From Podarcis bocagei (Eukaryota), in assembly GCA_964188305.1 (NCBI GenBank), contig OZ076899.1: a DNA stretch of 64,000 nucleotides. One strand, written 5' to 3'. Below, piece by piece: positions 3,401 through 59,600 of the stretch. The notes beneath the pieces are model-generated. The model was not told where the DNA came from, did not search any database, and worked only from the letters and a program-made list of their open reading frames with translations. Within the stretch, counting starts at the first letter, position 1; each line of letters begins with the position of its first letter. The position numbers were made by a program, and so were the translations under genes.

Positions 3401-6400
3401 ACAAAAAATGGAGAGGGGGGGGAGGGCGGATTGCCAGGTGATGAGAAGAAAAATGGTGACTTGACAAAGAGCGTAAGAGCAAGGACGGTTGGCTCTCAAA
3501 GAGCTGCCTGCAGAAAGAGCCGGAGTCAGGGGGAGTTATTTCCACCCCCAGGTGTATTGGTGGCCTTTGGGGAGGGAGAGGCAAAAACCCAGTGCCTTGG
3601 GTCAAGCCTTTGTCAGCCTCCATGCTTGTCAAGTCAGACCTCAAATCCTACAAATGGGAGAATGCCTCTCAGTGAGGTGCCCGTCCTTCTTTTCCTCAGG
3701 GTTTCCAAAAAACCACGGGAGATGAAGGGAAAGAAGAGCAAAAAGATCTCCCTGAAATACACGGCAGCCCGGCTCCATGAAAAGGGAGTCCTGTTGGAAA
3801 TTGAAGATCTGCAAGCCAGCCAGTGAGTATGTCATTTATCACAGCAGCATGCACAGAGGCAAGTCTCACCCAGTCAGCAGCATTCTGGGATAAAACTGGG
3901 AATGAACATTTTCATGGATTAGGGTGTTTGTGTGTAAATATTTGCTAGGAGTGTGCATCAGATTAAGACTAATTCTGAGGCCAAGTAGGGCTCCTAAGAA
4001 GGACTTTCGGCATGTCAGAGGCAAAGTGGGAGCTGTAGAAAACCTCTGAAGCACTTCATGGTGCTTCTGTGGACTAGACCAGTGTTTCCCAACCACTGTT
4101 CCGCGGCACACTAGTGTGCCGCGAGATGTTGCCTGGTGTGCCGCGAGATGTTGCCTGGAGGGAGGCGGGCGAGTCGGGCGGCGAGAGGCGGGGCGGCGGC
4201 GGCGAGGAAAGGCCGCCCAGCGCGGGGCTCTTGCCGTCTGCCTGCCTGGCTGCCTGCGAGCTCGGTGGGCAGCGCCTCCGTCCGCAGCGCCCGCCTCGCG
4301 GCTCTCATTCCCTGCCCCTGCCAAAGCTCACCCAGCCAAGCCGCGCTCTCCTTCCTGCCTCGCTTTGCTGCCTCCTCCCCCCCACCCCCAAAGCTTGGAG
4401 GTTCCCCGGCAAGGGGGAGGGAAAAAATTTGAAACTTACACTTTCGTGCGTCCCTCCCGGCGTGACGCTGCGCGCTGACGTCACGGGGCTGTAATGGTGG
4501 TGTGCCTCGAGATTTTTTTCATCAAACAAGTGTGCCTTTGCCCAAAAAAGGTTGGGAAACACTGGACTAGACATCAAAAACTGTGCTTGCTTGCAAGTCT
4601 TATAAAACTGAAAGTAATCTCTAAGCTCCCCAGACATGGCAATGCCATAATGGAATGATGGGGTAAGGGAGAGGAAGGAAACTGTCCGTTGTGACTGACA
4701 GGTCAAGTAAGGGACTCATTTTACCTAGAAATACAATTGCTTTCAGTTCTTCCAGTCTGAAATCCACACTGAAGCTATCTAGTGCAGTGTTTCCCAACCG
4801 GTGTTCTGCGGCACACTAGTGTGCCGCGAGACGATGCCTGGTGTGCCGTGGGAGGGAGGCGGGTGAGTCGGGCGGCGAGAGGCGGGGCGGCGGCAGCGAG
4901 GAGAGGCCGCCCAGCGCGGGGCTCTCGCCGTCTGCCTGCCTGGCTGCCTGCGTGGCGCTGACGTCACGGGGCTGTAACGTGCCCCACATAGGCACACGCG
5001 GGGCGGCGAGCGAGCTCCCTCCCACATCCCATCGCCGGCTCTGCACCAGGCGGTAGAGCTCGGCGAAGTCGCCGCGCTGGAAGGCCAGCAGCGCGCGCGC
5101 CTTGGCCAGGCTCTCGCCCGCCTGCAGCAGCCCCTCGCACACGCACGAGACCTGCTCCGCCGAGAAGCGCGGCGAGCGCGGAGGATCGGGCGCGGCGGAG
5201 GCCAGCCCCGCGCTTGGAGAGGACGCAGCAGCCGTCGCCAAACCCGATCCTCCTCCTGCTCCGCCGCCGTCCTCTGGCTCTCGGCCGGGAGGAGCCTGCG
5301 GCGACGGGGCGGGCGTCGAAGTTGGCAGAAGTTGGCGCGCCTCCTCGGCAGCGCCTTCGTCCTCCTCCTCCTGCCTCTGCTCTCCTCCGGCGGCGGGGGC
5401 GCGCCGCCCTCCCCGGCCGGGGGGCTCGGCGGGGCCCGCGGGGAAGGAGGCCATGTTTGCGGCGCGCGGGATCGCGGCCCCCCTCCGGCCCGCTCCCATC
5501 CCCCTGCGCGCTGCCCTAGCCGTGCGGGTCTCCTCCCCCTGCGCTGCCGTCCCCTTTCCACATCCTAGGAGCCGCGGTCCGCCTTCCGCCCCCGGGCCGC
5601 GGCATGGCTCCCAGCCTGGGCTGGCCTCCGCCTCCTGGGACGCGCGCCCACCCCCGCGGCCCCCCAAACTTCGGAGCAACTCTCCAGACGCTTCTCCCCC
5701 GCCTCGGTCTCCCTCCTTTACACTTCTCTTCCCCCCTTCCTTCCCTCTTTCTTTCTCTTTCTCTCCCACCCGCCTTTCCTTCTATTAACTTTCCTTTCCC
5801 CTTCCCATGTAGAACAGTCCCTGCAAATAAAAACCTAGCATATTTGGAAGAGGCATGCTAGCCTAACCATTACCTTCTATGCTGTTACTATTTTTTTATT
5901 TTTTTTTACATAAGTAAAAAGTGACCTTTCCCCATCTGGCATGGTGGTGTGCCTCGAGATTTTTTTCATGAAACAAGTGTGCCTTTGCCCAAAAAAGGTT
6001 GGGAAACACTGCTCTAGTGCAAGTACTTAATTCCTATCCAATAACCCTTTATTCTTCACTTCAACTCCCAATGGCACATTAAAACAATAAGCATATTTTT
6101 TTGTCCCCAAACTATAGATTCAAAAATGTGATATTTGAAATTAGCCCAACGGAAGAAGTCGGAGACTTTGAGGTAAAAGCAAAGTTCATGGGTGTACAGA
6201 TGGAGACGTTCATTCTACATTATCAGGTATGGATCTTGATGTTGTCTGTACAGTCCACCCTTATACTGAGTTTGCATCAGGGGATTTCGTTCAGGGTCTC
6301 CAAACTGTTACGGGGAAGGAGAGGATGATATTAGATATTTAACAATAAATCATGATGACCTATTCTCCTAGACTGCATTCCAGGTTTATCTAAATTAGAT

Positions 6401-7988
6401 TGAGGAGCACACTTCTTCAAAGGAAGCAGAAAGTGAAAGCTGGGGAACTAATTGAACAAAATGTTGGCCCATCTTCTCCAGAATGAGTCAGGCAGGGAAT
6501 GGCTGTGCTTGTGTGTCTAGACTCTGAGGGGAGGGATCCAGTGGGCCCTAGGTGATGCTTGAGTTGGATTGTATAATAATATCCAGCTGCAGACCTTAAT
6601 GAAAAGTGTATTTATCAAAGACAGATGTATTTAAATGTGCTAGCAGTTTTATATAGATGGATTTTAAAAATGACTCTCCACTCCCCCCCCCCCGGGATGG
6701 TGGTGGTGGGGAGGTTTATTGCCTGTTTGCACCAGATGATGCAGCAAAATGCCTTTTCACCCACACCCACCCCTGATGCAGGTGGACATTGCAAAACGGT
6801 TTGGGAATAGGCTTCTCCTTGATCAGGAGATGGCGTCTTCCAGACTTGTTCCTGGAGGGCACAGAGGCCTCCTTCCCACTCTCCAGGCCTGCCATGCCCA
6901 GTGCCTGAGCTATAGCATTTTTTTTTTTTAAATAGTTCATTCCTCCTCTTTTTCCCTCTTGGCCTAATTAGTGAGCAAGGAGATTTCCAGCAGTGATTCT
7001 AAGGAATAGTCCTATTATCAATTATTGATCCTAGATTGGAGTAAGAGTTTAGTTATTATTTTCATCTTTTTTGCCCAATTTGGTTCTTAGAGCTCTTTTA
7101 ATGTGCTGAAATAATCTTAGGGGAGCATATGGGGGGCGGGGAGCAAAGTGGACGGTGCAAATGCATATAACTTGCATAGGAAAAATAACTCCTAAAGCTT
7201 AATCTATTCACTGCCAACTTATTCTCTATTTAGCCTGCTATCAGAAAGTATGCAAGCATCAAGCAGCTGGGGTATAATTGCTGGGGCATAACATGGCTTG
7301 CTGTTCTCTTTCCATCTGCTGCCAAATGCAACATTCACCAGTCCTTCCTGTGTGCTCCATCCTCATTTCTTGGAAATGAGTTGAAGAGTCAGTGCGGAGG
7401 CATTTCCAGAATAATTTATTTCAGCAAAATGGCATGTGTACATTCTTACATGGGAAAACCATTTTTTTTTCTTATTTGGCAGCATTAAAGAAAAATGTGC
7501 ACTTAAATTACTGAAAACAAAATTAGAATGTCCAACAGGGATGGCATCCATGCTTTTACCAGTGAGGAAATCAGTTTTGGAGAAGTATCAATGCATGGAA
7601 TAGGGTTCCTTCCCACCCTGTGCAAAACAGAGAACCCTTCACTATAGCAGCTTGATAGCTTCCCCTTCCGCTGTGCATCACAAAAAAATGATGGCATGTG
7701 TTACTTGAGAAATGACTGCTGGGTATGATTTGCCCATCTCAGAGGTCCAAACTGGGCAAGATGTAGGAACGCTATAGGCCAAGCCTCTGTACGCTGACCA
7801 GCTGTGTCCTAGGAGCCGCAGCTGAGAATTTATTCTCTCTCTCTCTCTCCCCACCCCTCCTCTGGCTCCCACAGGATCTGTTGCAGCTCCAGTATGAAGG
7901 TGTGGCTGTCATGAAGTTGTTTGACCGAGCAAAAGTGAATGTCAATCTCCTCATTTTTCTCCTAAACAAGAAGTTCTATGGGAAGTAA
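417..7988 (+). CDS. IQGAP1: IQ motif-containing GTPase-activating protein 1, last 8 coding exons (5' part lies outside window)
   Basis: Exons 417-519, 865-1003, 2429-2516, 2744-2956, 3160-3326, 3700-3822, 6118-6226, 7875-7988 (TAA). All AG/GT bounded and phase-compatible. Peptides LLLDHQDAIAPEHNDPIHELLDDLG, VSKKPREMKGKKSKKISLKYTAARLHEKG and DLLQLQYEGVAVMKLFDRAKVNVNLLIFLLNKKFYGK* match the IQGAP1 C-terminal region. Confidence 0.96.
4080..4564 (+). mobile_element. Non-autonomous hAT (Charlie-like) element with GC-rich captured cargo
   Basis: TIRs CAGTGTTTCCCAAC...GTTGGGAAACACTG; perfect 8-bp TSD GACTAGAC (4072-4079 / 4565-4572). Confidence 0.92.
4785..6011 (+). mobile_element. Non-autonomous hAT element (same family) carrying a captured SIX5 gene fragment (Pack-TIR-like)
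   Basis: Same TIRs and subterminal sequence as 4080-4564; TSD ATCTAGTG/CTCTAGTG (7 of 8); internal SIX5-like coding sequence on the minus strand. Confidence 0.92.
5035..5454 (-). pseudogene. SIX5: Transposon-captured SIX5 exon 1 fragment (N-terminus plus internally deleted SIX domain, no homeodomain)
   Basis: MASFPAGPAEP...EEARQLL...RFSAEQVSCVCEGLLQAG/ESLAKARALLAFQRGDFAELYRLVQSR compared with recalled human SIX5 MATLPAEP...EEARQLL...RFSPEQVACVCEALLQAG...LRARALVAFQRGEYAELYRLLESR. About 20 residues are missing after LLQAG. Confidence 0.85.
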
Positions 7989-9268: not shown

Positions 9269-14639
<5,371 letters not shown>

Positions 14640-14741
14640 CTTCGTTTCTCCGGCGAGACCCGGAAGCGCCTGCAGGGGTTGCTCTTCCGGGGCGCCAGGG
14701 AGCCGCTCTACCCGCCTCTTCTCCCCTTGGTACACGAGGAG
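14640..14741. promoter_or_regulatory. Bidirectional CpG-island promoter shared by GNPTG and TSR3
   Basis: Divergent ATGs at 14639 (-) and 14742 (+); inverted ETS/GABP sites CCGGAAG (14660-14666) and CTTCCGG (14684-14690); YY1-type GCCGCCATCTT over the GNPTG ATG. Confidence 0.85.
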
Positions 14742-17700
14742 ATGGGGCGGAAGCGGCAGCAGCAGCAGCAACGGCGGCAGCGGCAGCCCCGGCCGGGACC
14801 CCCTCTCGAGGCCTTCGCGGAGGCGGAGGATGAGGAAGGCCCCGGCGGCGACTCCGGCCCCATCTCGGGCGGGGACCCGCTCCGCGGCCACTCTTCCTCC
14901 TCCCCCGTCAAGGGCGCGGCGGCGGGGTCGTCGTCGGCCGAGCCGGAGCCGGGTAGCGGCAGCGTCCGGGGATGCGGCGAGGTCCGGGCCTCGCCTTCTC
15001 CCCCGCTGGCCATGTGGGACTTGGGCCACTGCGACCCGCGGCGCTGCACGGGGCGGCGGCTGGCGAGGAAGGGGCTGGTGCGGACGCTGCGCCTGGGGCA
15101 GCGCTTCGGAGGCGTCATCCTCAGCCCCGCCGCCACCCGCTTCGTCTCCCCCGCAGACAGGTGAGCGGGGCCGGCGGAGCTAGGAAGGTGTTAGAAGGAA
15201 AATCTGCTCCCTTTTCCCTTATGGGGTATCCAAGAGCCCGTATAGAGTCCTTATGTAGGTTCTCTATCGGTAGGAGAAAATAACAGAGAATATTGAGAAG
15301 CAAAGCAGCTAGTAAGCCGGATCTTTATTGAACTGTTGCAACAGGGTGTTCACTCAACACATTCAGGAGCGAGGAGCAACCCAGAACATTTGTGTGCAAG
15401 CAGTTATATAGACTTTTGAAATAGCCTACCCTGTAGCTCAAGACCACCCCCCAAAACATCATACATACATCACAGAAAGAGGTGGTCCCCCGCAGAAATT
15501 TGTTGTGTGTGTTGCTTCTCTCCTGTCAGCCAGGATACCTGATAATGCTTTATATGATTGCCTTTTCTGGGTAGCCTGGCCATCCCTTTGAGATGGTAAA
15601 TACTTAGTTCCTGAATCTCTTACGCATATTGATAGTGTTAAAAGAAAATATGGAACATGTATTAATATCAATAAAGGTCAAGCCCTTACTTCCTTTTTAG
15701 ATACTTGCCAGATTGTATTTACAGGCATCTAGAGGAAAGGGGTAGGCAGCAAAGACAGGAGGAGGGTTTCTGCCCGTTTGAGGGGAAAAGGCAGGACCTT
15801 TCATCATGCTATACTATACTCAGGGCCACTCAACGGTAATGTTGGGCAGACAAAAGAAAGCAGCTCTTCACACAGCTGGTAATAAACTCTGGAATTTGCT
15901 CACTGAGAGGCAGTGATAGCCATCAACTTGAATGATTTTCACTGAGGATTAGACAGATTCATGACAAGCCTATCAGTGGCTTCTAGCCATAATTGTTTTG
16001 TTCTGTCTCTATTGCTGCCTCTGAATGAGTGCTGTGTTCATGCCCTGCTTGCAGGCTTCCCTCAGGCATCTGTAAGAACAGGCTGGTCCAGCTACAGGGC
16101 TGCTTTCTTCTTAGTGCTCATGTGTAGGGCCAGTATGTGGAGCCTGTAAGACTGATACTTCAGGGTTGAGGTGCGTTCCCAGCCAGTGTTCTTTTGGGGC
16201 TGTGTTCCAGTGGATGCTTCCACAAGCTAGTGAGCTGATGAAACTTCACACCTTAGGATCGATGTAACGTTGCTGAGTCCTTGGTTATTCAGATTTGTTC
16301 AGATTTGGCCACATCCAGTGTCTTCACATGAGAAGTCTGGCTTGGCGGTCTTGAGCAACTCACATCTGCTATCCTAACTGGATCCCAAAGCAGCTCCAGT
16401 GGGGCGAGAAACCAGCAACATCCTGGTTTGAAATTGCTGTTGCTGTGTTTTTAGACAGATTGTGGCTCAGAATGGAATTGCGGTGATTGACTGCTCTTGG
16501 GCAAAGCTGGATGAGACGCCATTTGCCAAGATGAAGGGAAGCCATCTCCGCCTGCTGCCCTTTCTGGTGGCTGCAAATCCAGTGAACTACGGCCGGCCAT
16601 GCAAACTCTCCTGTGTGGAAGCATTTGCAGCTACTTTCTACATTGTGGGTGAGGCTGGAAGAAAAGCTTGTAGGTCTAATTCTTTGCTGTAAAGTGGACT
16701 GTATGAATACATGCCTGTGTGCAGCCACGCCTTAGTGTCAAACATATTTCCTTGATGACTGGGACAAGTTTGAAAATGTTCTGTGGGTCTGTGGGATCTG
16801 CTGAGGAATCTGGGGTCTGTTCTCTCCACATTCCCTCCCTTCTTTTGAGCACTGCTATAGGCTTACAGCAAGGTGTATGCGAATGTACATATTGCTCAAT
16901 TACTTTTTAATAGGGACTTCTGTCTTTATTTTGAGCTACCTGCCTCTGTCCCAACTAACTGATTAATTGAAGAATGTGGCAAGATTTCTGAGTGATGCTA
17001 TAAAATTGTCACCATAGGTCTTAACGTACCTCACAATGTCTGGTCTGGACAGTTTTATCCTAAAGTACCTCTTAATATGTTTCATTAACTGTGTTGTATT
17101 TTGATCCATGTATACAATGCACTTTTTATGCCAATGAAGTCTGATAGATAGATACTGATAGATAGATAGATAGATAGATAAAAACTTACTTATTTCACAA
17201 TGTCACCAGCAACTAGGAGGTATGGGGCTGGACAGCTTCTTTACCTGCAAAGTACCTTGTAATTTTTTTTAAAATGCAGACTTTCTTGTCTTTATTTTAG
17301 GATTCTCTGATCTTGCCATAATCCTCTTACAAAAATTTAAATGGGGAAAAGTGTTCCTTGATTTGAATAAAGACCTCCTGGAGAAATATGCAGCCTGTAA
17401 TTGTGAAGAGGAAGTACTGAAAGTTGAACAAGAGTTTCTGGCTCATGCCCAAGAAAAAGAAAAAGAAGAAATAGGTAAGAACCTACTGACTTTTACTTCT
17501 GAGGACCTTTGAGTCTTCTTAAACAATGCCTTGATATTGCCCTTGTCTACCCTGCACCTCCATGGTCAGGAAATCAAGTGGTGCTCAGTCAGAAAGCTGC
17601 TCCATTCTTCTGGGATGAACATATGGGATCAGTCAGCCACATAACTTGGGTGCCCCCTAGGAGCGTGGGGAATCCCCAGCATAGAACTATACTACATCAC

Positions 17701-20846: not shown

Positions 20847-25809
<4,963 letters not shown>

Positions 25810-44500: not shown

Positions 44501-47361
44501 TTGCTCCATAAGGATCTGATTACTATTATGCTTGTGGTAGTGTGGCTAGAATTAGCCAAGCAATGGAAAAGACTACAGTGGGGGGGAAACTGTGGAAATA
44601 GCTTACCTGAGAAACTGACATACTAGGATCATATTGACATGAGAAATTGTTTTTTGCTTGGCAGTACTTATGCCAGTAGGAGCAACCTGAAAGGTGGTCT
44701 CTCTCCCCCTCCTACAACTGTCTCATGAGCAAATATGGCAAGACATACTGGGAGACAGCTGTTTTGACAGTCTGATTTTCTTAGTGTATGCCCACTGTTT
44801 ATGAAAGTAGCTACTCTATTTTTTCAATGAATATTTAAAAAGTTAAGTAAGAACCAGCATCGATAAACAACATGATCTAGGCAAGTTCAGACTTGCACTC
44901 TGAGGCAATACACAAGGGGCGTTATCAGGAACTAAAGGGCAAGGAGAGGCAGCTCACTTGAGTCATTAAAAGCAAGCTTAAGCTATATGCCAAGTGAATC
45001 TTTCAGGACTGGAGTGCAATCTGACCACTGCCAAGGCACACTTAACAATTAACTAAGCAGCCATGGACACTATGAAGACTGTAAGCTTTTATGGACTAGC
45101 ATCTACCTCATCAGATACATTGCATGCCATTGCTACATAGGTGTAGAGAAAGAAATACAAACAGTGAGATCATATGGAAATGAAATGCAAAAAGAGGTGT
45201 CACATTTGCATTAAAGCTTAAAATCCACGTTTCACAACCCCTTTGAAGTTTCCTTATTCAAGTCCAGGAGCAACCAACATGGTGCCTTCCAGTTGTTGCT
45301 GAAGTACAACTCCCACCTTCCCTGACCATTTGTCATGCTGGCTGGCGCTGAAGCATGTCACAGTCCAACATAAGGAGGACACCAAGTTAGCTATTCCTGA
45401 GTTAGTCTGTTGGGAGCAGACTTTCTGCATGTTGCCTTCATCTCTGAGTCCAACCAGAAGAGAGAATAACAACTTTACTCCAGAGAAAAGGAGCCAACTT
45501 CTAGGGGCCAAGGTCTTCTTCGGCCTCCCCAATAAAATATATTTTGGGGGGGCTAAAGTTGATGGGCATCGCCATTCAAATGACTGGAGCTTACCTGCCC
45601 CCCTCCCCAAATATTTGATTCAAGTTGGCATCCCTGCCCCAGAGAAGAGGAACCTGTCTGGTGAAGAGAAGTCAAGGAGAACCCAGGTATGCAGAGTCTA
45701 GAGCAGCCTTTGCTAATCTGGTGTTCTGCAGATGTCATTGGACTCCAACCCCCATTAGCTCCTGCTGCCAGCCATGGATGATGGAAGTCAGAGTCCACCA
45801 GCATTTGGAGAATCATAGGTCCCCCCTGGGTAAAACAAGAGAACCTTCAATCTACTAAAAGAAGCCCGGAGACAAAGCTGTTTTGAACAAGCCTTTTAGA
45901 GTGACTCTCAAGAAATACAGTCTCTTTCCCAAAGCTGATTTTCTACATCAACAGTAAGTTGGATCAGATAACCTTTGATGGCCCTCCTAGATTTACAAGT
46001 GAAATAATACTACCATGTCTTGTTACATCTGTTCTGCCTAAGAAATCTGTCTTTTGTCTAGGGTGTTAGAAACGTTAGGGTTACAAGTCAGGCTTTATTT
46101 TCTCAAATCATGAGGACATAATCCCAGGTGGGTCACCTGGTTCATGTAGCCCCTAGGATGGACCCGTTTGGCCTGGATCTCCAAGCTGGAACCGAGACCA
46201 ACCAGCTGGCCACAGCAACTATATTTGGGTTTGATTTTCCCTCATAATTATGGAAGCCGCCCAGAGTGGCTGGGGAGGCCCAGCCAGATGGGCGGGGTAT
46301 AAATAATAAATTATTATTATTATCATCATAAAACCTTCCTTTGTGTTAATATCTTGCTTGCTAGAGAGTTCTGATAAACTGAAAACTTCTCACATTTTCA
46401 AGACTTGTGGGCTTTGGTGGGGCCCAGCACTTCAGTACTGGAGTCTCTCACTTGCAGTATGCCTAGGGACCAGCAGCATGCCCATTGAGGCCCAGGTGGG
46501 CTTTGCACGGGCATAGGAAGGGTTCCTTTTATAGAAAGGGGGCTACGGCTGGTGCTCCACGTCAGGCAGCATGATGCTTTGAGCTGGCACTGAGATCTCC
46601 CTTCAACCCCGTTGCTCCACACCCTCTGCTCAAGACAAGTGTGGATCCCTCGTGAACTCGCAGTGTAACCCTATGCGTGTTTCCTCGGAAGCAAGTCCTA
46701 CTGTGCTCAATGCATACTAATTATACATGCTCAACACTTAAAAGTTGCCTGCCTAGATGCGGGAGAAAAGGCGGCCAACCTCCCGGGTAACCGACCAGAA
46801 AAGAGCGGGAACCTGACGGTGGGCGTCTCTTTCACAGTAACGACGGAGCCGCTGACACAGGTGGCCTGAGCGGCTTTCTCACGCAGAGGCCCGGCACTCC
46901 GGGAGGAACCGGGGCAGCAAAGCGGGGGCCCTCCAGCCTAGTGCCCGCGGTGGGGCGGCCAAGCTATGGGGTCCTCGCCCGGCCTGTCCCCGGAGCACCT
47001 GCAGAATGCGGCGGCGGCGTCCCCTCACCTTGTCGGAGTCGAGGTCCGGGTCGGCCTGGCAGAGGCGGAAAAGGAAGCTTTTGGGGTCCCTGCAGAGCGT
47101 CTGCCGGGTGGTGAGGAAGCAGGTGCCGCCCACGTTCAGCCGGACCCATTTCCCGGGCACGCCGCCCGCGACGGGAGGTGCCGGGGGAGCGAGGCAGCCC
47201 CCGCACGACGACGACGAGGAGGACGACGAAGGCGAGGAGAAGGACGACGACGACGAACTGGAGCTGCTGCTGCAGCGCCGGCAGGAGGCGGAGGGAGCCC
47301 CGGACAGGCCAAGCCCTGCCGCCGGCACCACCGGCAGCTCGCAGGAGCCCTCCGCCGCCAT
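32518..47361 (-). CDS. KCTD5: BTB/POZ domain-containing protein KCTD5, complete, 6 coding exons
   Basis: Exons (minus) 47361-47029, 41846-41738, 41267-41176, 40817-40722, 39526-39401, 32547-32518. [94 protein letters not shown]|ILQERGSRM*. Adjacent to PDPK1, supporting KCTD5 over KCTD2/17. Confidence 0.95.
32940..33121 (+). mobile_element. CR1 LINE 3' end
   Basis: TTGGAGGTTTTCAAGCAGAGGTTGGATGGCCATCTGTC...TTCCAACTCTACAATTCTATGACTCTAT. Confidence 0.8.
35782..35840 (-). CDS. KCTD5: Candidate alternative cassette exon of KCTD5 encoding [14 protein letters not shown]
   Basis: Long pyrimidine tract plus CAG acceptor, phase 0 matching exon 5, 14 mostly acidic codons then TAA, then ATG|GTGAGC donor 14 nt later. 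Confidence 0.5.
38477..38838. mobile_element. Tc2/pogo-like non-autonomous element with GC-rich interior
   Basis: TA-CCGTATTGGCCCGAATATAAGCTGC ... GGCTTATATTCAGGCCAA; same TIR family as 62594-63164. Confidence 0.75.
43115..43460 (+). mobile_element. CR1-like LINE fragment
   Basis: GACTTCTTCACACAGCACATAGTTAAACTACAGAATTTACT..GGCTTTTAAAAAGGAT..AAATTCATGGAAGAT. Confidence 0.5.
43830..43910 (-). mobile_element. Possible ancient Gypsy-type integrase remnant
   Basis: Minus-strand [23 protein letters not shown] resembles the YWP..K.V..C..C zinc-binding integrase motif; flanks are decayed. Confidence 0.25.
46255..46325 (+). mobile_element. 3' tail of the same non-LTR retroelement family
   Basis: GCCGCCCAGAGTGGCTGGGGAGGCCCAGCCAGATGGGCGGGGTATAAATAATAAATTATTATT. 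Confidence 0.55.
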
Positions 47362-56600: not shown

Positions 56601-59600
56601 TAAGACTATATTTCCCCCCCAAAAAAATTAGTTTAAAATTGGGGGGGGGGGGTTGCGTCTTATACATAGAATGTTGTGATTATTTATTTCTTAATTTAGG
56701 CTTAAAATCGTCTTATACATGGGGGCGTCTTATACACGGAAAAATACGGTAACTGTGTGGCCATCTTTTATTTTACTCAGTACATCACTTTTGCCATCAA
56801 GGCAAAATCCCATTCATTTTCTGGCCACTTGTTCTGCTGTTAGTGATATTCTCCATTTCTTTGCTTAAAAACATTCTTGCTTCAATTCACAAATGGGACT
56901 AATTCCTCGTGCTCTGTCTCACTGAGGCTTCAACACAATTTAGTAAGGACGGACAAGACCTAGAGAGGTTTCATATAGACTGTAAAATGCTTTATCTGCT
57001 TCCACTTTTTAATAATAGCATTAATAATAACCACCTCCCTTCTCCTGTTGACACTTTTTGTATTTTCCTTCCCAGTTATACTTAAGAAAATCAGTAGGGT
57101 TCCCAAGATTTTCACTGGAATGATTTTACCTATATTCTGCAGCTATTTAACTAAATTTTATGGGTGATTCGCAAGTCATAAGAGGCCAATTTAAATCAAG
57201 AGGCTCCAGTAGAGTGATTTCAATGGGTCTACTATTGAATATGACACTGAGACACTGGATATCACTCTGCATCGTAATAAAGGGTTATTTTACCTAATTT
57301 CCCCAAATCAGCTAATTTCCTCAGAGCAATCCTCACCCAATCTGGGTAAGGCACAGGAGAGTGTGATGGGCAGCATAGCCACTGCTCCATCAGTTGCACA
57401 TGTCAACCAGGACAGATGTGGGGACAAACAAACCCTTGCTCCACTCTACAGTCCACCCTGGGACTGCTGACAGCAGTGGAGCCAGTTCAGTCCTCCCTCT
57501 CCAAAACACCCCATTTGGCAGGCAGCATGAGAAATTCAGTGGTGCTGGAGGAGTGCTGCTGAGGCCACTCTGAACAGCAGGAGGAGATTTCTGCCCTATC
57601 CACCCATGCTACCCACCCCCAATATGGCAGATGAGGGGGCTCGGGTCGCAGCCTCATTTCTTGATTCACTATCTACATAATTTATTACCCATTTTACGTT
57701 AAGACACTCAAGCCAAAGGGGGGGGGGAGGTTTGTTGGATTCAAATTTCTCCTAATTTCTGAATGATCAATAGTCCTGCCTTGATTGATTAAATCTATGT
57801 ATCAGAAAAATCCCCGTCTCCAAATTTTAAAGCCTCTATCTCTTTCACAAATTTCACCAGCGATCCCATATTTTTAACCAGCTGGAAACTAGAACATTTC
57901 CTTTTACTTGCTTTGTTTCATTATCTCCTCACAGTACATCCATGTATCACTCTTTAACCCTCCACTTGCATGCAGAAATTCTGCGAGAGAGGGAGGAAGC
58001 TGGGAAGGAGCTCTGCTTTCAGCTCAGTATCTGCTCTCACCCTCTGGTCATGTGAACTTTACAAGTGAAAGTGAGGGTGACAGAGGAGCCAAGGATTAGA
58101 CCAGAGCAAGAACTACAGGCCTATTTCTCCCTTGAAGGATGCAAAGGTATTGAAAAGACCTTTATAGATCAAGATGGGCACTCCTACTGCGACTGCTGAG
58201 ATGGATGGAGAAGGATGTGAGGCACTCACAAGGGCAAACTGCCCTTCAGGATCTTCCCTGGCATCAGTATCAAAGCCTGCACTTACATTTCCATAGCAAT
58301 CCTCATCATCTTCTGACATTGCGGGCAAATATGCAGTGAGCTTGGGTGGTGTCTGAAGATGCAGATTCTCCCAGGTGATGGAGTCGAAAAAGGAGTGGGC
58401 CTTCAAGGGCTCATATCCTCCCATTTCTTCACAGCCTAACCTCTTGGTAGCATCTTGGACCTGGTTAAGTGAAGACACAGTTACATTTTCCCTGGAAAGA
58501 CTCAGGGGGCGTCTCTGGCTCCACTCCCTGTCATTTCAGATCTTGGTGACTCATGTCAGTCCACCTCTGTGGACAATCTGTTAATGTGGGACCTTTGATG
58601 TACCTAGTAAAAGCGAGACTCCAGGAAGGAGGAGGACAATTGAGATTTCTTCTCCAAGTACCCCTTCATGGTGATTCACAAGGGGCTTTTGCAATAACCC
58701 GTGAAACAAAGGCTTGTATAGGTTTAACTAGTGTAAAGCAATGGGATAGACATCCTCTCAAGGAACTGGTCATGAAGTCAACTTGCTTTCTGGAGCAAGT
58801 GGGAGGCAAGTGGCTAATTAAAAGAGAAAAGAGGTGGAAGGAGACAGGCAGGAAGGAAAGGAATGCTGGTTGCTGGCTTTGAGGCTGACATCTGTATCAT
58901 ATGGTACTTGTGGTGCTAAAATCTTGAACACCAACTGACTGAAAAGTTCCAGCTAGTTTGGGAACCAAGCTAACAGTCTAGTTCCATGAAGAGAGGGAAA
59001 GTAGGGGGGGGGGGCTTAGCTGGAAATTAATACCTCAATACAAGGTATAGAGGAGTCTATCTGTGGGTCGGGGTGAGGCTAGGAAGCGAAAGGGCAGAAA
59101 ACCCCATGGGAAGGCGGTGGGGACTAAGAAACAAGGCCCTGAAGATGCTTTGTGGAAAAGCAGGAGAGACAGGGAACAAGTCAAAGGGGCAACAGTTGGT
59201 GGGCGGGACTCTGAAGCCTAGAGGGCCAAAACACCGGCTGGGGTAGAACAGCAGCAATGAGTACCACATTTTGTGCAAGTTATCTGACTGGAGGCTTCTA
59301 GCATGGACTGGAAACTTTTGACAATACAATTCATTTACCAAAAGCTTTTCTACGAGATCTTTTGCCTTCGGAAAGAACTTCTCTGGGAATTCATACTCCA
59401 ATTTGATTATCTTCTGGAATATGAGATATTCATTTCTGCAAAAAGGATGGTGAAAAGTATAGTTACATCTATGCAAACATTTCCTATAAGTCTACTTCAA
59501 GGTTGAAACTATACCACCCTATGGGTACACGGGCAAACACTAACTTGGTGGGAAGTCTGGCATTGGTGTGCTCCAAAATCTTACCCGGCTCTGAATGGTG

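Follow-up and report, generated by a model that had tools for sequence, protein, structure and literature searches.

A hAT-type transposon carrying the 5′ end of SIX5 in an intron of a lacertid lizard

In plants, DNA transposons that capture gene fragments are of major influence, whereas among animals such capture is regarded as rare and as giving mostly single copies. Elements of the hAT superfamily are recognized by 8-bp TSDs and short TIRs beginning with (C/T)A(A/G)NG; a target with a CTAG core is characteristic of the Charlie group. Among hAT elements, Ds-like derivatives with internal deletions (Ac/Ds, abortive gap repair) keep the termini and subtermini, while the interior is made of unrelated filler pieces lying side by side.

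For animals, Tan et al. (2021, Nat Commun 12:4280; PMC8277862) reported 370 Pack-TIRs in 100 genomes, 208 of them on hAT elements. Only four were multicopy (in frog and alligator), and multicopy Pack-TIRs tended to capture GC-rich sequence. The sole lizard genome in that survey, anoCar2, had no Pack-TIR, with only 77 of its TIR elements having entered the search. Gap filling or template switching was proposed as the origin of animal Pack-TIRs (PMC8277862).

The DNA analysed here (the window) is a stretch of 64,000 nt from Podarcis bocagei. An initial annotation, made from the letters of the window, had described within it a hAT element that captured the 5′ end of SIX5; this description is now backed by a 97% DNA match to a lacertid SIX5 locus and by a probable further copy in P. 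muralis, where the same junction occurs at another site.

Two related elements in one IQGAP-family intron

Three consecutive plus-strand exons of the window match Pfam RasGAP_C in profile order (positions 1–36, 37–91 and 103–136); the host is therefore an IQGAP-family gene. The initial annotation had named IQGAP1. Its family assignment stands on the three exons, and the gene is presumably IQGAP1 itself, judging by the C-terminus. Exons lying downstream of the IQGAP-family 3′ end, at 14562–15164, 22328–22732, 46879–47361 and 58113–59476, are those of genes that we take to be TSR3-like, UBE2I, KCTD5 and PDPK1. In human, TSR3, UBE2I, KCTD5 and PDPK1 are situated on 16p13.3 and not beside IQGAP1, so that the neighbourhood would differ from that of mammals.

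The following features define the intron and the ends of the two elements, which we call A and B.

3701–3824, plus strand: upstream host exon of the IQGAP-family gene (RasGAP_C positions 103–136)
4080–4564, plus strand: sister element A, of the same hAT family; 485 bp with a TIR pair and TSD
4777–4784, no strand: left TSD of element B, ATCTAGTG, with a CTAG core like that of the TSD of element A
4785–6011: element B, a non-autonomous hAT-type transposon of 1,227 bp, with a TIR pair and TSD
4785–4799, plus strand: 5′ TIR of element B, CAGTGTTTCCCAACC, found by exact-match count
4785–4977, plus strand: 5′ backbone of element B, GC-rich, with GTGTGCC/GGCACAC subterminal motifs and a TGACGTCA site; common to element A
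5941–6011, plus strand: 3′ backbone of element B, including the 3′ TIR (5997–6011); 98.6% identical to window 4494–4564 in element A
6012–6019, no strand: right TSD of element B, CTCTAGTG, pairing with 4777–4784
6119–6228, plus strand: downstream host exon (FKNVIFEISPTEE...), read from the sequence, its splice phase fitting the previous exon

The downstream exon (6119–6228) had no Pfam hit. Elements A and B share the intron 3825–6118 and occupy 1,712 of its 2,294 bp (75%), so that the intron without them would measure only ∼570 bp. Element B ends on the right 107 bp upstream of the next splice acceptor, and the SIX5 fragment that it carries is antisense to the IQGAP-family host gene.

The sequence CAGTGTTTCCCAACC forms a perfect 15-bp TIR of element B, at 4785–4799 on the plus strand and at 5997–6011 on the minus strand. 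Exact matches to it number four in the 64-kb window (0.13 expected) and make two inverted pairs, one for each element. The 8-bp TSD of element B matches at 7 of 8 positions (ATCTAGTG versus CTCTAGTG), in agreement with the 1.23-kb element with TIRs and a 7/8 TSD of the initial annotation; the TSD of element A is perfect, with GACTAGAC on both sides (8/8). The TIR of both elements starts with CAGTG and fits the hAT motif given above. Judged by these sequence features, element B is a non-autonomous member of the hAT superfamily, Charlie-like in its TIR and CTAG-core target. No transposase domain was found by domain search in any ORF of elements A or B, and no autonomous partner with CAGTGTTTCCCAACC termini was seen within the 64-kb window. 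Presence of two independent insertions of the same family at CTAG-core targets in a single intron suggests a strong target or local preference.

The GTGTGCC/GGCACAC motif occurs 25 times in the window; 11 of the 25 occurrences fall inside elements A and B, close to their ends. Such a distribution is the pattern expected of subterminal repeats with a putative role in transposase binding. The GTGTGCC pair at 11631/11666 was considered as an extra element fragment and rejected, being unrelated sequence that adjoins a microsatellite. At 11578–11622 the window has a microsatellite in which a pentanucleotide, (GCTGA)n, is repeated about nine times.

Comparison of the two elements delimits their common backbone and their individual inserts. 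In the 5′ backbone, positions 1–179 of A align to 1–168 of B at 88% identity and differ by an 11-bp indel; a stretch of 23 bp with TGACGTCA (B 171–193, A 393–415) is 100% identical, and the last 71 bp at the 3′ end are 98.6% identical. Relative to A, element B has an insert of 963 bp (4978–5940) placed exactly between ...GGGGCTGTAA and TGGTGGTGTGCC... Element A has a GC-rich insert of its own, 213 bp in length (4259–4471), which is absent from element B and is positioned 23 bp from the place of B's cargo. A search of the window and of the 22-kb SIX5 locus of P. raffonei gave no match to this 213-bp insert. On its minus strand it contains a splice-donor-like motif, GTAAGT.

The SIX5 cargo of element B

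As parent reference DNA we used the 22-kb Podarcis raffonei SIX5 locus (L001, from CM049757.1), which is an orthologue of the SIX5 gene of the window genome; the parent reference proteins were SIX5 of P. raffonei, P. muralis and Zootoca vivipara. The insert of element B is composed as follows.

4978–5033, no strand: 56-bp filler between the backbone and the SIX5 block, with one GGCACAC motif; no SIX5-locus match
5034–5454, minus strand: captured SIX5 coding fragment, from the ATG at 5454 to the equivalent of codon 172, with small deletions; aligns to L001 6001–6517 and matches Pfam SIX1_SD
5455–5805, minus strand: captured SIX5 upstream region (GA-rich tract, CpG island, 5′ UTR and/or proximal promoter); aligns to L001 5635–6000, directly 5′ of the SIX5 ATG
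5806–5940, no strand: 135-bp AT-rich segment, which may be another filler or what is left of a longer progenitor; no match found

The 772 bp of window 5034–5805 (minus strand) align to positions 5635–6517 of the P. raffonei locus, a span from 366 bp upstream of the ATG (at 6001) to 517 bp into exon 1, codon 172. With 22 mismatches among the 772 aligned bases the captured block is 97.2% identical to the P. raffonei orthologue, and homology to SIX5 stops abruptly at both of its edges. The initial annotation had placed about 780 bp of CpG-dense, SIX5-like sequence in the interior; the block derived from SIX5 is 5034–5805 and does not make up the whole interior, since 191 bp of the insert (56 bp plus 135 bp) are not from SIX5. 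Neither the 22-kb P. raffonei SIX5 locus nor the remainder of the window contains a match to the filler 4978–5033; for the segment 5806–5940 the same locus, element A and the rest of the window likewise gave none.

The GA-rich tract (∼5455–5810), earlier called upstream or 5′UTR-like, aligns upstream of the P. raffonei SIX5 ATG and is therefore genuine SIX5 upstream sequence. The parent gene itself has no neighbouring element of this kind in P. raffonei: no CAGTGTTTCCCAACC-type terminal repeat was present beside SIX5 in the 22-kb locus.

The SIX5 start codon is the minus-strand ATG at 5454; its −3 base is A and its +4 base G, as expected from the Kozak ATG annotated initially. The encoded peptide contains EEARQLL, FSAEQVSCVCEGLLQAG and ARALLAFQRGDFAELYRL, all three exactly as had been listed. 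The HMMER check with Pfam SIX1_SD that was proposed together with these motifs gave a match at profile positions 38–69, with a score of 27.9 bits, barely over the cut-off of 27.4. Identity of the peptide to SIX5 was 94% for P. raffonei, 96% for P. muralis and 92% for Zootoca vivipara. The peptide also matches a SIX1 crystal-structure chain; its true relatives, as identified by an exhaustive HMMER search and cluster look-up, are SIX5 proteins of squamates, tuatara, turtles and marsupials.

The CpG-dense character of the interior noted in the initial annotation was evident: the interior of element B has 67% G+C and a CpG observed/expected ratio of 0.91, versus 0.20–0.23 in the flanks. The observed/expected ratios were as follows.

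Captured SIX5 block (772 bp, 93 CpG): 0.94
P. raffonei parent interval: 0.95
Whole element B: 0.91
Element A: 0.84
Flanking intron: 0.20–0.23

Copy and parent differ by 22 substitutions, of which CpG-to-TpG/CpA changes account for five on the side of the copy and for none on that of the parent; in the backbone, 6 of the 11 differences between elements A and B are of this type. Some CpG decay has therefore happened. Intact CpG content had been taken to indicate recent capture or absence of methylation; the density is indeed kept (0.94 versus 0.95), but with five CpG losses the content is not wholly intact. Loss of CpG in element B is thus detectable yet small, and would fit a young insertion as well as weak methylation in the germline.

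A probable second copy, coding potential and origin

The best match of an exhaustive protein search was the UniRef entry A0A670I980 of P. muralis (380 aa), named SIX1 SD-domain-containing protein. Its homology to SIX5 ends at the same residue (...LVQSR), with the junction ...LVQSRRWDVGG... as in element B, and past the junction the same non-SIX5 peptide follows (RWDVGGSSLAAPRVPMWGTLQPRDVSATQAARQADGESP...); the 56-bp filler is present as well, encoding ...RRWDVGGSSLAAPRVPMWGTLQ... The protein then reads through the backbone to the TIR-encoded ...TPVGKH, after which it diverges fully from the window flank. Since the junctions are the same and the flank right after the TIR is different, the chimera appears to have transposed after the capture. 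At the protein level and from one database entry, A0A670I980 is best read as a second copy of one capture event, located at a different insertion site and with a precise element boundary. Transposition would lead to such a pattern, unlike segmental duplication or capture in place. Database proteins were searched for further copies of the chimera with two queries, the 317-aa frame and the part of A0A670I980 around the junction; only A0A670I980 and true SIX5 fragments were returned.

A Ser residue is common to both copies and to Zootoca SIX5, while both Podarcis SIX5 proteins have Pro at this position. Because the Ser of both copies is shared with Zootoca, there is a weak hint that the capture may predate the Podarcis radiation.

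Along its length, A0A670I980 takes in SIX5 upstream sequence, the SIX5 fragment, transposon backbone, the TIR and finally flanking DNA. The entry looks like an annotation artefact, i.e. read-through of a Pack-hAT copy rather than a gene, and the UniProt record could be corrected in this sense; the copy behind it is possibly transcribed.

Six gaps interrupt the alignment of the window copy with P. raffonei SIX5, and each of them is a deletion on the side of the former (5, 1, 9, 15, 3 and 78 bp). The largest, missed in the initial annotation, is in frame; owing to it, the SIX domain lacks 26 codons between ...CEGLL and QAGESLAKA... Its junction is marked by a short repeat.

5114–5125, minus strand: junction of the 78-bp deletion, with the 12-bp direct repeat GCAGGCGGGCGA; two BLAST segments overlap by 12 bp at this alignment gap

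The 26 residues are retained in the A0A670I980 copy and in all true SIX5 proteins, which makes the deletion specific to the copy in the window. Out of a full SIX1_SD profile of 113 positions, the element B copy covers 38–69 and A0A670I980 covers 1–70. The reading frame of element B from the ATG at 5454 has 212 codons; SIX5 homology ends at codon 172, at most ∼60% of the SIX domain is present in the fragment and the homeodomain is absent. With the SIX domain truncated and the homeodomain absent, the fragment carried by element B is unable to encode a working SIX5.

We estimate at roughly 85% the probability that element B is a hAT element which captured the 5′ end of SIX5, was then moved in trans and later lost 78 bp. 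Most likely, an older hAT element gained the 772 bp of SIX5 5′ DNA by a template switch during double-strand-break repair or replication. Intact termini, an interior of several unrelated pieces and a cargo taken from a gene 5′ end fit template switching during hAT repair or replication; the abortive gap-repair/gap-filling and FoSTeST models of Tan et al. are matching proposals (PMC8277862). The chimera would have been mobilisable in trans by the transposase of the family because it kept both TIRs and the subterminal GTGTGCC motifs. It would have reached at least two genomic sites, one of them the IQGAP-family intron, and the element B copy afterwards lost the 78 bp of the SIX domain between the 12-bp direct repeats. 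What element B brings to its host intron would be a CpG-island-like block with possible promoter activity.

It is quite unlikely that the capture occurred in place, in a resident intron hAT which was broken, had its gap filled with SIX5 and never moved. Such an account suits the fact that most animal Pack-TIRs are single-copy and were explained by transposition-independent gap filling (Tan et al., PMC8277862), and here one further copy is documented, with two extra protein searches having given no more. Yet this copy, A0A670I980, has the same succession of SIX5, filler and backbone joined to a different flank directly after the TIR, and thus marks a second site. The same entry bears on the scarcely credible alternative of an assembly artefact, with GC-rich SIX5 reads misjoined into a hAT copy. 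CpG islands, being GC-rich, and repeated elements are prone to misassembly; however, an identical chimeric junction is found in a separate database entry and at another site, the ends and TSD of element B are intact, and 22 substitutions and 6 deletions relative to true SIX5 mean that these are not simply misplaced SIX5 reads.

Chance arrival of a SIX5 pseudogene fragment inside a hAT, by an RNA route or by segmental duplication, would leave a nested pair of unrelated insertions. The cargo consists wholly of exon 1 and upstream sequence (5′ UTR and/or proximal promoter) and includes no intron that would establish an origin from DNA, which leaves some room for this account. LINE-mediated retrocopies, however, are truncated at the 5′ end and keep the 3′ end; a retrocopy of SIX5 should have retained the 3′ end of the gene and is made unlikely by a cargo that is the 5′ end, including sequence upstream of the ATG, and by the absence of a poly(A) tail. 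There is also no duplication flanking the cargo, which sits in the interior of an element with both terminal regions intact, while element A has a different GC-rich insert 23 bp away and the chimera, as seen in A0A670I980, moved as a single unit. We regard such a nested origin as very unlikely. Capture by the hAT element followed by transposition remains the preferred reading.

A broader reading is tentative, and we hold it possible rather than probable: in lacertids, a hAT family of recent activity may time and again take up CpG-island promoters together with first exons and spread them as mobile CpG islands that largely escape CpG decay. The initial annotation had likewise proposed a lizard hAT family that transduplicates CpG islands of developmental genes. 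The basis of this reading is the presence of two elements with different GC-rich inserts in one intron, which would be ∼570 bp long without them, and of a probable second copy of the SIX5 chimera. If true, the family would be a vertebrate counterpart of plant Pack-MULEs, able to seed new promoters and antisense transcripts within genes, in the present case 107 bp from an IQGAP-family exon. If a lacertid hAT has carried the promoter-proximal CpG island and the beginning of a developmental homeobox gene to several sites, it would present a tractable vertebrate case in which to follow the uptake of cargo, the methylation state of CpG islands after transposition and the possible rise of new promoters.

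Comparison with known systems

The terminus of element B has likenesses outside lizards. Miniature hAT2_NA elements of Manduca sexta have a 14-bp TIR, CAGTGTTTCCCAAC, identical to that of element B, and an 8-bp TSD as well (PMC3845634); this likeness to an insect element (Zhang et al. 2013) covers the terminus alone, and kinship is at most a possibility. A metagenome scan with the 25-bp terminus found two JGI contigs with the identical sequence GCCCAAAAAAGGTTGGGAAACACTG, L002 (1109–1133) and L003 (278–302). The two contigs represent one locus of a eukaryote with ∼39% G+C, and the element there is otherwise unrelated beyond the 25 bp; no long ORF and no transposase were found in either contig. 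The terminus shared with these contigs and with the Manduca hAT2_NA hints at a widespread hAT lineage, possibly dispersed by horizontal transfer.

Element B resembles Ds-like derivatives in that its termini are kept and filler pieces lie adjacent to each other; unlike in these derivatives, the filler is a recognisable gene 5′ end and has been propagated. Plant Pack-MULEs differ from element B in belonging to the Mutator superfamily, with 9–11-bp TSDs, long TIRs and plant hosts. The likeness is in the cargo: in both the Pack-MULEs of rice and other plants and element B, GC-rich gene 5′ ends were captured as fragments by a non-autonomous transposon and amplified (PMC8277862).

The features of a Pack-type element are found in element B, namely TIRs and a TSD, no transposase, and an interior derived from host-gene exon sequence. 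As in the Pack-TIRs of animals, and the Pack-hATs among them, a non-autonomous TIR element of the hAT superfamily with an 8-bp TSD carries a fragment of a host gene (PMC8277862). The cargo of element B is GC-rich and comes from a gene 5′ end, and a multicopy Pack-TIR of frog likewise captured a 5′ UTR (PMC8277862). In contrast to the animal survey, which had none in anoCar2 (PMC8277862), the chimera represented by element B is apparently present at two or more lacertid sites. Pack-TIRs were thus already known in animals, and element B is apparently a multicopy Pack-hAT in a group not previously surveyed.
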